A DNA stretch of 64,000 bases from Octopus bimaculoides (taxonomy: Eukaryota): assembly GCF_001194135.2 (NCBI RefSeq), contig NC_068985.1, forward strand, positions 107,092,840 to 107,156,839. The letters are read 5' to 3'. The position numbers and the translations under genes are program-made. Below, one piece after another: positions 1,540 to 63,255 of this stretch; positions within the stretch are counted from its first letter, which is position 1; every line of letters starts with the position of its first letter. The notes beneath the pieces are model-generated. The model searched no databases. It was not told the origin of the DNA and saw nothing but the letters and a program-made list of their open reading frames with translations.

Positions 1540-41717
<40,178 letters not shown>

Positions 41718-41902
41718 CTTTCAACTATTTACACAGAAGCAGGCGCAATTCTGTTCAAGTCGATAAAGGTGATTAATAAGACATAACGAACCAAAGAAAT
41801 GTTGGTCGGAAAAAAACTTCACATTATTCCAACAATGTATATGGCCATGTTGGAGATATATATTTTGTTCTCCCGTTACTGGAGAGTGCATAATTCCACT
41901 TA

Positions 41903-41910
41903 ACTTCCGG
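41903..41910 (-). promoter_or_regulatory. ETS/GABP-type motif CCGGAAGT in the probable STUB1 promoter
   Basis: Exact 8-mer 186 bp upstream of the ATG in a locally CpG-rich, repeat-free stretch. Motif only. Confidence 0.35.
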
Positions 41911-44900
41911 CATTCGACCGACACATGTTCATTACACTATATTCCACAACAGCAGACTTCGTTACTTAAGATAACATTATTCTACACAACATTGCAATAC
42001 ACTTCTTTCTACTATCCTACATTGCATTACACCACCCTGATGCGCGACATTAACACTACACCGCATACAACATATCTAACATGAGAATCACTTCGTGTTT
42101 ATTCAGCCTGCAAATAATAGCAGCTAAATATTCTTTGAATTACACTCTGCTTTCTTAAAGGTATATGTGCACTGGATAGTTTTGTCCAAGATTCACTATA
42201 CCTGAAAATGTCGGATGGTCATGGCCGGAATCCTTTTGATCATGAGCATGCTTGTATGAACGAAGCCTTTACATTTTCGTTCGATCTGCTAAGGATGCCT
42301 GCCAAATCTTCCGGAAATCACACCCTACAATCGTAAAATGGAAGTTTACGTTGGATTCTTTAGAGCTTTGCCTGAGAAAATGATGGAATGGTCATGACTG
42401 GAACGTCCTTCATCGTAGGTCAGCCCTGACTGAGCTAATCGTTGCTAAACAACAAGGGAACTTCTAGTTGTCTGTTTGTCTTGCTAGAAATAGCACATAA
42501 ATCCCATTATACAGTCTTTTTGAAAAAGCCGGGCAAATTAGATAATTTATCTTAGATAAACGATGCTTCAAAAAGAAAAAAAAAGACGGTGGAATCATGG
42601 ATTGGATCGTCTTTGTTGGCCGATCGACCTGCTAAAAAATAAAAATTAAATTTCAAACTATACCCTACTATCTTAAAAAGTGCTGATCAGTAGCTTAACG
42701 ACCGCAACGCTATTACATTCTACATCCCTCAAAACGTTATATTACTTGAGTTACTCAACCTGCTAGAAATAGCAGCCATGTTTCCAACATAGTTTTGGAA
42801 AAGGACGCGTTTGAAAATGTTCTGGATTCTCAGCACATAGGAAAAAAACGAGATGGTCATGGCTGGAATGCCTTCGATCATAGGTCTGCTGCTTTTGCGG
42901 CTGAATAACAATGCCTTTAATTATAAGTCAACTCAACCAAGTCAGGTTTGAGGCTAAACTACAACGTACGATTCAGTGTGTAATCGACCCATGGTGGAAG
43001 GCACAACAACTGTCCACCTTGGACTACGTTCCTCCAGAACATACAGGAACAAGCTGAAACAGTGAAAGAAACACTGTCTTAACTTGTACTTGTATGCCTA
43101 GACTATCACACTGCCCTTTGCATATGTTAAATGACTGCATGTATTAATGTGGAGTGTAATCCTCAGGTAGGCAGAGATATGACTCTATCTGAAGTGGTTC
43201 AAATCTTGATCATCCATCTACAGGAGTCAAGCCAAATAGGAAGCTTCTGCCTTGTTGCTTTATATACCAGAAATACCTGTCAAATCTTCTTGATCTGCTC
43301 AAGTAAGGCTGAGATGAAGTTAAGCAACAATGTGCTACAAACTAATAAATATGCTGTCACTTGACCTGCTAGAAATAACAGCCAAGAAAAATGGGGATCT
43401 GGTGCAGTTAACAGTTTTTGTGTGTTTTTAAATGGCTAACATGTGGCTTCTGCACTGCAATACAGATGATTAAAAGTAAAATTGTTTACTTGACCATGAG
43501 GGCAGATCTCTTGTAAAAAGTAAACCATTTGGGATCTCCTAAAACAGATTGGGTTGTTCATTTAAATTCAAATCTTCAGAAGAAAAATTATTACTTGCTA
43601 GCCAAAGAATTTGCAAGAAAAATGCATGCAAAATATTCTATTAAGTGTGCAAAACTGCATCAAAATGCCTTTCTTACAAAATTAAAGAACATTTCAAATT
43701 TAATGATCTCTTTATGTCTGTCAAAAGTAAACAATCATTGCCAAGGGATCTTTTTTATAATAGGGTTAATACATCTGTCTTTGTAAAATGTTCCCTACAA
43801 TTTAATAAGTTTTCACAAGGTGCTTAATAAATGAATGGAATCGAACCAGTGTGTGCATGTTAATTATATTGGCATAATGATTTTCCTTTTAACAAAATGT
43901 TTTATATCTAATTATGTATCAAGAGTAGTGGATTAGCAGAATCATTAGAATGTCAAATAAAACAGCATGCAGTATTTATCTGTGATCATTATATTCAGAG
44001 TTCAGTCCTACTGAAATCAACTTTGCAATTTTTATGTTTCTGGGTTCAATGAAATAAAATACCAAAAAGGTTATGATATTGATTTAACTGAGTACACCCC
44101 CTCACCAAGTTTGTGGTCTTATTCCAGCGTTAGAAAACAATAATATATTTTTTTCTATTATAGGTGCTAAGCCTGAAATTTGCAAGGAGGGTTCTAGTCC
44201 AATTACAATCCCAGTGCTTGACTGGTATTTAATGGACCTTGAGAGGATGAAAGACAAAGTCAACCTCGGCAGAATTTGACTCAGACTGTGAAGTGGAAGA
44301 ATTGCCTCAAAGCATTTTGTCCTGAATACTAATGATTTGCCACCTTAAAAATTTGAAGTTACCTATGGCAGGATTTGAACACAGAATGCAAGGGACCAGA
44401 AGTTCCTACAATGCAAAGTATTGTAGTCCAATACTTTAGCAAATCTGCCAGCTCATTACAATTTTTTGTAGACAATATCAAACACCAGCATCTACAAATT
44501 CCTGCTTTAATGAATTTGAAGTGTAAAATCGTTGGCAGAGCAAGAGTAAGAGAGATGTTATAAAACAATGTGATATTGGTTGATTACAAGTCTACTCATT
44601 CAGAGATGATTTGAAGATTAAACAACATCTGGCAGTAGAAAAAAAACTTCATATTTTGCAGAACAATATCCACAAAATATCTTACTGATGTTGAATCAAG
44701 CAATCAACTGTCTACTTCAAATAGCACATAAGGGATTCATCCACCTCTGAGGGTTCCTCAAAGTTGTTTAACCTGCTAAAAATAACAGACAAAAATACCT
44801 CAAAACACATTCTTACATTCTACTGTCTTGAAAACAGTTGGGGTGCATTGTATAACGTGATCTTAGAAACACTGAATCTAAAAAACAAATTAAGGTGAGA

Positions 44901-46850: not shown

Positions 46851-47609
46851 TTATTTATTTACTTCTTTTCTTCTTGGTAGTGCATAAGATTTTTCAGCTT
46901 TCGAATCTTTAATGTTACAAATAACATTGTAACATTTAGAGGTACAATTAACAAGACATTGAGGCGCACAGCTTCGGTAAAATGACCTGATGTAAACAGG
47001 ACATCCAGTGACACAGAGTGATGTGACCATGAATAAAAGGCTCAACACTGTCACTACAGAAAACATCATTATTACTGTGCTCCAAAAGTTGGTTTCCTTA
47101 GTTTTAGGCTTTGTATCATAATGTGGCATTTGCTCTCCCTTCTGTTCACTCACCCCTTCCCCAGTAACAATTTTCACAAAAATTGGCGTTGGGTTTATTA
47201 GCTTCCTGAAAGGATCGTTAATGTAATTTTTCTTAATGTCCTCTGCCTTCTTGTGGAATATCATTTGAGAGAGTTTGTCTGCTAGATCTTTCCTACCAAT
47301 TTGATGCAGTCGACGTGAGAGGTCATGGAAGGTCTTGTGCCTTCCCTTATTCTGATCATAATTGAGTAACAGGATTAAACATGGAACTGGAGGTTTAGTT
47401 TTTTTGACTTTTGTTCTATTAAAGTTCTTTGGTAATTCCCATGTGTTTATTCGTAGTGCTCTCACTAACATTGCACACTCTCTAATGCTCAGGTGGTCAG
47501 AAATGAACTGAAGTTCATGAATATTCATGTCAATAATGCCATCACCTTGTTTTATAATGTGATAAAATAGTGCCAGCCAAATTAGTGTGGATATTACTTT
47601 CAAGTTCAT
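46851..47609 (-). CDS. Single-exon type I membrane protein, TMDD1 (C12orf81)-like, with N-terminal death-domain-like region
   Basis: 252-aa uninterrupted non-repetitive ORF, the longest real ORF in the window. Signal-peptide-like aa 1-24; helical region aa ~27-130 (ELQFISDHLSIREC...CLILLL...LSRRLHQIGRKDLADKL); hydrophobic TM aa ~176-200; Cys-rich tail. The TMDD1 similarity is from memory and was not searched. Confidence 0.8.
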   Translation of the reverse strand: MNLKVISTLIWLALFYHIIKQGDGIIDMNIHELQFISDHLSIRECAMLVRALRINTWELPKNFNRTKVKKTKPPVPCLILLLNYDQNKGRHKTFHDLSRRLHQIGRKDLADKLSQMIFHKKAEDIKKNYINDPFRKLINPTPIFVKIVTGEGVSEQKGEQMPHYDTKPKTKETNFWSTVIMMFSVVTVLSLLFMVTSLCVTGCPVYIRSFYRSCAPQCLVNCTSKCYNVICNIKDSKAEKSYALPRRKEVNK

Positions 47610-52470: not shown

Positions 52471-53245
52471 AATCATCATCGTTTAATGTCTGCTTTCCAT
52501 GCTAGCATGGGTTGGACGATTTGACTGAGGACTGGAGAACCAGATGGCTGCACCAGGCTCCAATTTGATTTGGCAGAGTTTCTACAGCTGGATGCCCTTC
52601 CACTCTGAGAGTGTAGTGGGTGCTTTTACATGCCACTGGTTCAAGGGCCAGTCAGGTGCTACTGGCAATGACCACGCTCAAATGATGTTTTTTACATGCC
52701 ACCTGTACAGGAGCCAGTCCAGCGGCACTGGCAACGACTTCGCTCGAATGTTTTTTCACGTGCCATTAAGGCGGCACTGATAATGAACATGCTTAAATGG
52801 TAGTATTTACATGCCACCGGCATGGAAGCCAGACAGCTGCTCTGGCAATGATCACGCACAGACAGTGCTGTTAGTGCTCCACTGGCACGGGTGCCAGTCA
52901 TCAAATTTGGTTCAATTACGATTTCGATTTCACTTGCCCCCAACAGGTCTTCGCAAGCAGAGTTTAGTGTCCTATGAAGGAAAGGTTGGCATGGATGCCA
53001 GTTGTCAAATTTGGTTCGATTTCGATTCCACTTGCCTCAACAGGTCTTCGCAAGCAGAGTTTAGTGTCCAATGAAGGAAAGGTATGCATAAGTGGGCTGA
53101 CTACACCCCTGGCAAAGGCCACGGGTTATGGTCTCACTTGGCTTGCCGGGTTTTCTCACGCACAGCATATTTCCAAAGGTCTCGGTCACTAAGTATTGCC
53201 TCGGTGAGGCCTAATGTTCAAACGTCGTGCTTCACCACCTCATCT
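52471..53245 (-). mobile_element. RTE-clade LINE 3' fragment (end of ORF, 3' UTR, (GAT)n tail)
   Basis: Colinear with the 8560-9195 copy, which encodes the RTE C-terminus. Carries a copy-specific ~105-bp internal tandem duplication near 52880-53085. Short tail copies at ~10, 9941, 14278, 27152, 31936, 32860, 51590, 55880, 58920, 59505, 60380 and 63420. Confidence 0.8.

Positions 53246-56846: not shown

Positions 56847-63255
<6,409 letters not shown>

Follow-up and report, generated by a model that had tools for sequence, protein, structure and literature searches.

An octopus protein with a predicted extracytosolic death domain and its probable place in the TMDD1 family

Does Octopus bimaculoides possess a protein that carries its death domain outside the cytosol, and what could such a protein do? 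The question is raised by a reading frame at positions 46851-47609 (minus strand) of the 64,000-nt stretch of O. bimaculoides DNA analyzed here (the window). A first-pass annotation had described it as an intronless gene for a receptor-like protein with an apparently extracellular death domain, reminiscent of TMDD1, and with a ladder of regularly spaced cysteines in the tail. NCBI labels the gene "uncharacterized protein" (LOC106879591 group), and we found no literature on its locus identifier.

The gene and its surroundings

The reading frame is intact: it starts with ATG, comprises 252 codons and ends with a TAA stop at 46851-46853, and an in-frame TGA is present 60 nt upstream of the start codon. 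It is the sole ORF of at least 120 aa in its part of the window that arises neither from an assembly gap nor from a microsatellite. As the public gene call (GCA_001194135.2, CM046605.1) gives the identical 759-nt range with a 252-residue product, the coding sequence consists of a single exon, and the term "intronless" holds for the CDS (introns in the untranslated regions are possible). The protein has cysteines at positions 45, 77, 199, 203, 214, 218, 222, 226 and 231, hydropathy peaks at residues 1-19 and 173-209, and the C-terminus RRKEVNK; indeed, all residue-level statements made at first reading (the cysteine positions, the sequon N64-R-T and the C-terminus) match the translated ORF. A hexamer resembling a polyadenylation signal (AATAAA, 46854-46859, minus strand; a consensus match only) overlaps the last codons, and a further AATAAA is found at about 46614. 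The gene is single-copy within the window, i.e., no paralogue was found there.

Three genes are called around the locus, all on the minus strand. The upstream neighbor encodes a protein with an Aminotran_5 domain (56847-57609, extending upstream), whereas downstream a CHIP/STUB1-like gene (CHIP_TPR_N and U-box, i.e., TPR plus U-box) has been called at 41577-41919 and on downstream to at least 36851. The orthologue in Argonauta hians adjoins the same CHIP-like gene, so the synteny of the two genes is kept. Alignable between the window and the Argonauta locus are the CDS (74% nucleotide identity, 656 nt), the first exon of the CHIP-like gene (82%) and interspersed repeats; the DNA flanking the CDS is, these repeats aside, unalignable.

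An interspersed repeat of ~150 bp occurs seven times or more in the window (~10-167, 9940-10100, 14276-14435, 31953-32129, 52472-52601, 59532-59683 and 60380-60537) and in several copies at the Argonauta locus (8546-8706, 10919-11053, 19388-19517, 19774-19935 and 20537-20691 of contig L001), with 70-85% identity, and looks like a SINE/MITE-type element common to octopods. The window is AT-rich and of draft-type assembly, with many spurious ORFs stemming from microsatellites and gaps; its five runs of N (2190-2534, 5415-5903, 14507-14702, 23782-23808 and 39602-39824) account for long, spurious "X" entries among the mechanically listed ORFs. Furthermore, a low-complexity tract with an excess of C over G (6001-8300, GC skew -0.47) contains pseudo-ORFs of 120-205 aa that are rich in Ser and Leu; the tract probably represents a degenerate CT-rich microsatellite or satellite DNA.

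Family, fold and predicted topology

A profile built from three octopod sequences was searched against 1.84 billion representative proteins and retrieved 155 matches at E<=1e-3 (92 of them at E<=1e-10). With few exceptions, they measure 200-300 aa, match the profile from the leader through the domain and contain a single transmembrane (TM) segment at about 150-200. Members are found in gastropods (Pomacea, Patella, Aplysia, Physella, Batillaria), in insects of about six orders (Apolygus, Aphis, Diabrotica, Ischnura, Schistocerca, Trichogramma; P0057, P0058, P0092, P0093, P0024 and P0157, with Hemiptera, Coleoptera, Odonata, Orthoptera and Hymenoptera as the orders named), in tardigrades (Hypsibius, Paramacrobiotus) and, among deuterostomes, in a lancelet and the hemichordate Saccoglossus (P0131). 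The conserved family suspected in the first place thus comprises relatives across molluscs, insects, tardigrades, a lancelet and a hemichordate. In an alignment of 64 members, D27, N29, L40, L48, L81, G89, R100, L101 and L113 are conserved in at least 90% of the sequences, and two columns, C45 and C77, are the only invariant ones. One full-length family protein (P0012) is filed under Siedleckia nematoides (EukProt EP00918), an apicomplexan parasite of polychaetes; most likely it represents contamination of the Siedleckia transcriptome by the annelid host and not a protist member of the family.

The assignment of residues 25-135 (47205-47537, minus strand) to the death-domain fold can be taken as established for the family as a whole and is well supported in octopus. 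The Pfam Death profile (PF00531) matches the octopus sequence with 21.8 bits (E=2e-4), just below its gathering cutoff of 22.6, and 25 of the 64 family members are matched at E<=0.01, the best one at 8e-8. TMDD1 domains likewise miss the strict Pfam threshold (bioRxiv 10.64898/2026.05.13.724128). A Pfam match of the octopus protein to DUF2135 (E=0.028) was dismissed as chance. When a domain-only profile (71 sequences) was compared with the PDB sequences, all 16 matches were death domains, led by THOC1 (3.6e-5), ankyrin-3 (ANK3; 2e-4), Fas (5e-4) and NRADD (6e-4), followed by ankyrin-2/1 and FADD, with alignments covering almost the whole death domain; the same search with the octopus sequence alone gave noise only (LptG, GST; E of about 1).

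AlphaFold2 with the three octopod sequences alone yielded an unusable model (pLDDT 43) and was repeated with the 64 family sequences. The resulting model has a pLDDT of 79.8 overall and of 84-97 across residues 30-130, with six helices in all (30-39, 42-53, 77-86, 94-103, 107-130 and a short one at 133-136). With the full-length model as a query, death folds, mostly death domains proper, make up about 45 of the 50 best Foldseek matches in the PDB, with target-normalized TM-scores of 0.5-0.65 and an rmsd of about 5-6 Å; the best E-value is 0.26, and there was no match at E<=1e-3. The structural check proposed in the first-pass annotation thus returned a confident six-helix model whose top matches are death folds, albeit with weak E-values, and together with the Pfam and PDB profile matches it bears out the death-domain reading.

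The domain is preceded by a predicted signal peptide (residues 1-24, MNLKVISTLIWLALFYHIIKQGDG; 47538-47609, minus strand), whose h-region (ISTLIWLALFYHII) of ~14 residues is followed by KQGDG, with glycine at positions -3 and -1 before I25. The predicted cleavage after G24 rests on hydropathy, on comparison with the family and on the -3/-1 rule; residue 25 opens the conserved motif (I/T)-x-D-x-N of the domain. A short hydrophobic leader (median 22 aa) stands directly before the domain in 109 of the 121 family members with a complete N-terminus, and a TM segment follows the domain in 92 of them. In the octopus protein, a poorly conserved stalk or linker (residues 136-174; 47088-47204; pLDDT <50 at 151-162) leads to a single TM helix at residues ~175-203 (47001-47087; hydropathy >2.0; helix 173-202 in the model), which ends in C199-x3-C203-P and is followed by the cytoplasmic tail (residues 204-252; 46854-47000; all minus strand). 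Judged by its sequence, the octopus protein spans the membrane once with type I topology, and its death domain is predicted to face the ER lumen or the cell exterior, since the domain sits between the cleavable-type leader and the single TM helix. Even if the leader were not cleaved, K4 on its N-terminal side would favor an N-in orientation and therefore a domain outside. The placement outside the cytosol proposed at first reading is hence retained.

C45 (codon at 47475-47477, at the start of helix 2) and C77 (47379-47381, at the start of helix 4; both on the minus strand) are the only cysteines of the helical domain, as had been noted before, and C77 is invariant in the set of 71 sequences as well. 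The residues of THOC1 aligned to them in the domain-profile alignment are not cysteines. A disulfide C45-C77 is predicted; the invariant pair would fit an oxidizing compartment and the disulfide reported as specific for the death domain of TMDD1 (10.64898/2026.05.13.724128). The sequon N64-R-T (47412-47420, minus strand), situated in the variable loop between helices 2 and 4, is kept in a second octopod and lost in Argonauta, and it therefore adds little as evidence for the topology; the tail has a sequon of its own, N221-C-T.

Constraint was estimated from three octopods, i.e., the O. bimaculoides window, the Logan contig L002 (SRR11869385) and Argonauta hians (contig L001). The octopus protein shares 85% amino acid identity with the second octopod (the Logan contig) and 63-65% with Argonauta. 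For the whole ORF, the three pairs gave dN/dS values of 0.28, 0.18 and 0.20 (Nei-Gojobori), 0.18 being a value for Argonauta, at a dS to Argonauta of about 1.4 (up to 1.36). The gene is therefore under purifying selection. The death domain is at 0.07-0.08 against Argonauta, the cytoplasmic tail at 0.12-0.28, and the stalk is the least constrained region (0.42-0.58); for the Argonauta comparison with 0.18 overall, the values are 0.08 in the death domain and 0.12 in the tail. The second octopod has its stop directly after ALPRR, five codons earlier (L002 1459-1461 versus window 46854-46868), so the terminal KEVNK is not conserved. L002 was considered as a spliced transcript and rejected as such: it is colinear with genomic DNA (window 47804-46795) and thus provides no evidence for splicing or expression.

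Relationship to TMDD1 and a possible role in fertilization

A preprint that is not peer-reviewed (bioRxiv 10.64898/2026.05.13.724128, May 2026) singles out TMDD1 as the one family whose death domain is extracellular. According to it, PSI-BLAST traces TMDD1 to lancelets, molluscs, annelids and tardigrades, and human TMDD1 (P0DPE3, NP_001373666.1) finds the protein of Pomacea canaliculata (A0A2T7PE00) at 2.4e-9, with a reciprocal match at 1.6e-6 and a tree that agrees. The same Pomacea protein (P0028) is matched by our octopod profile at E=2.2e-20 over leader, domain and TM segment, and by pairwise BLASTP at 2e-23 (29% identity over 133 aa). In this way the resemblance to TMDD1, noted in the first-pass annotation, could be substantiated, and the octopus protein very probably belongs to the TMDD1 family. 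Its link to vertebrate TMDD1 is transitive via Pomacea and rests on the preprint. Vertebrate TMDD1 was not reached by our profile searches of a named database of 5.8 billion proteins, which gave six matches each and whose word index also missed members of the alignment. A weak hint is provided by the zebrafish tmdd1 guide RNA, which encodes ALQQIGR as compared to RLHQIGR in octopus; the exact peptide ALQQIGR is present in no retrieved protein. Molluscs, tardigrades and a lancelet are common to our search and the preprint, whereas the insect members and the hemichordate one belong to taxa that its text does not list (10.64898/2026.05.13.724128).

The architecture reported for TMDD1 in the preprint is that of the octopus protein: a signal peptide, an extracellular death domain directly after it, the cysteine pair, a single TM helix and a short tail. 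The TM helix starts at about 175 in octopus and at 215 in human, the octopus stalk being shorter. The coding sequence is a single exon in octopus, whereas the zebrafish tmdd1 mutation lies in exon 3; the mouse coding region is similarly compact and fits within a 1.1-kb deletion (10.64898/2026.05.13.724128). The homologues from Pomacea (A0A2T7PE00), Aplysia (LOC106011343), Physella, Patella and Batillaria have the same architecture as the octopus protein, with a loop between helices 2 and 4 that cannot be aligned between octopus and gastropods. Classical death domains (Fas, FADD, ankyrin, THOC1/p84, NRADD/p75NTR) have the same six-helix fold; however, they are cytosolic or nuclear and lack the cysteine pair, whereas the octopus domain is predicted to be extracytosolic and scores below the Pfam gathering cutoff.

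The view of the family as functionally uncharacterized is outdated. Knockout of TMDD1 makes males sterile in both zebrafish and mouse, and the protein is part of the sperm SPARK complex, where it co-immunoprecipitates with TMEM81-IZUMO1-SPACA6 (TIS) and with DCST1/2 (bioRxiv 10.64898/2026.05.13.724128). Direct binding to DCST1/2 is predicted, in zebrafish with an interface that involves the death domain and an ipTM of about 0.6. In mutants, TMDD1 and DCST1/2 are depleted together, and TMDD1 is needed for sperm-egg adhesion in fish and for fusion in mouse. DCST1/2 and FAM187 are conserved and required in invertebrates; the authors propose a core of DCST1/2 which FAM187A and TMDD1 joined later, and report TMDD1 as an essential, ancient part of the sperm fertilization machinery beside DCST1/2 and FAM187 (10.64898/2026.05.13.724128).

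Taken as a whole, the octopus protein is probably a sperm-surface TMDD1 orthologue; for the fertilization role itself, which follows from orthology only, the balance tips slightly in favor. From orthology, the protein would be made in male germ cells and displayed at the surface of the sperm, where the extracellular death domain could serve as an assembly module on the ectodomains of DCST1 and DCST2, probably together with a FAM187-type Ig protein. Its binding would stabilize the ancestral core of the machinery on which sperm-egg adhesion and fusion depend. A loss of TMDD1 would take the partners with it and leave the sperm unable to fertilize.

A somatic cell-surface receptor, whose death domain would oligomerize in trans or bind a ligand and whose Cys-rich tail would signal, is an unlikely competitor. 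Homotypic oligomerization through death domains is established knowledge, and dozens of Logan- or metagenome-derived family members carry no tissue information, which leaves room for somatic expression. However, all functional data on the family relate specifically to sperm (10.64898/2026.05.13.724128), the tail contains no signaling domain recognizable by Pfam, and selection on the domain is purifying rather than diversifying. Moreover, the window contains one copy of the gene and the family shows no expansion, a pattern atypical of immune receptor families in invertebrates. The homotypic adhesion or immune receptor suggested at first thus finds no support in the present evidence.

The two further rivals fare worse. 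Since the death domain of NRADD is among the best PDB sequence matches, one might think of a p75NTR/NRADD- or TNFR-like receptor of inverted topology, with the N-terminal segment as an anchor and the death domain in the cytosol. This is highly improbable, as the domains of NRADD and p75NTR stand C-terminal to the TM segment, whereas that of the octopus protein stands N-terminal to it, right after an h-region of 14 residues, too short for an anchor; the family-wide leader length (median 22 aa), the orientation favored by K4 even for an uncleaved leader, and a cysteine pair suited to an oxidizing compartment argue against it as well. A chance ORF or a decaying pseudogene in repeat-rich octopus DNA would be in keeping with the AT-rich window, its many spurious microsatellite and gap ORFs and a Logan contig that is colinear with genomic DNA and shows no splicing, but it is effectively refuted by a frame that is intact in three octopods at a dS of up to 1.36 and a dN/dS of 0.18, by a CDS that aligns at 74% nucleotide identity between unalignable flanks, and by 155 homologues across Bilateria. 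We therefore keep to the reading of a sperm-surface TMDD1 orthologue.

The gene now labeled "uncharacterized" gains an annotation as a cephalopod TMDD1 orthologue, and the added sequences sharpen the TMDD1 family profile in its conserved positions (C45, C77 and the QIGR-x-DLA helix). The concept of an extracellular death domain with a role in sperm was already set by the 2026 preprint and is unchanged here (10.64898/2026.05.13.724128). The mollusc-specific cysteine ladder of the tail is the sole feature that has not been described before, and we flag it as testable.

The cysteine ladder of the tail

The ladder (C199, C203, C214, C218, C222, C226 and C231; 46917-47015, minus strand) starts at the end of the TM helix and occupies the juxtamembrane part of the predicted cytosolic tail. 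Residues 197-233 contain seven cysteines with four C-x3-C pairs (shuffle P=0.005), and the run of four at 214/218/222/226 has a shuffle P of 0.012. All seven are invariant in the three octopods, whereas the last five residues of the tail are not conserved. A mollusc-like subset of the family likewise has a C-P where the chain leaves the membrane, along with a stretch rich in cysteines, e.g., Aplysia (CLRACPSVCSASC) and P0005 (CYQVCPTACSVRC), and Aplysia and Physella share with octopus both the juxtamembrane C-P motif and the run C-x3-C-x3-C-x3-C. Similar ladders are found in other mollusc-like members and are absent from insects and tardigrades, whose tails are basic or acidic with few cysteines; unlike octopus, Pomacea has only three tail cysteines and no C-x3-C pair. 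By this comparison of tails, the ladder is a mollusc-lineage feature and not a family-wide one, and while the preprint terms the TMDD1 tail "weakly conserved" (10.64898/2026.05.13.724128), the octopus ladder is conserved and common to other molluscs.

Dense juxtamembrane cytosolic cysteines are typical S-acylation sites. The cysteine clusters of coronavirus spike tails, the SNAP25 linker and cysteine-string protein are similarly dense and start at the cytosolic end of a TM segment; the regular i+4 spacing over four turns in octopus is unusual compared to these, and the likeness is one of analogy, not homology. Multiple palmitoylation may be the likeliest role of the tail, a tentative proposal for which position and conservation speak: the ladder would be multiply S-acylated and pin an amphipathic tail to the inner leaflet. 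Metal binding is an alternative, which we rank below palmitoylation. It is rather improbable that the ladder, beyond anchoring by lipids, acts in molluscs as a metal- or redox-dependent module coupling the extracellular death-domain/DCST assembly to membrane microdomains or to the parts of DCST1/2 that are cytoplasmic and rich in cysteines, or that the octopus protein is used outside fertilization; should such a module exist, fusion would be subject to a regulatory input in invertebrate sperm that is missing from vertebrate TMDD1.

Besides the ladder, another tail motif was noticed in the family. Octopods have no clear counterpart of it beyond a possible K-S-Y-A-L-P, but many lophotrochozoan members, e.g., P0009, P0013, P0014, P0016, P0036, P0043, P0099 and P0028, carry K-(H/Y/F)-x-(I/L/V)-G ~45-55 residues after the TM segment.
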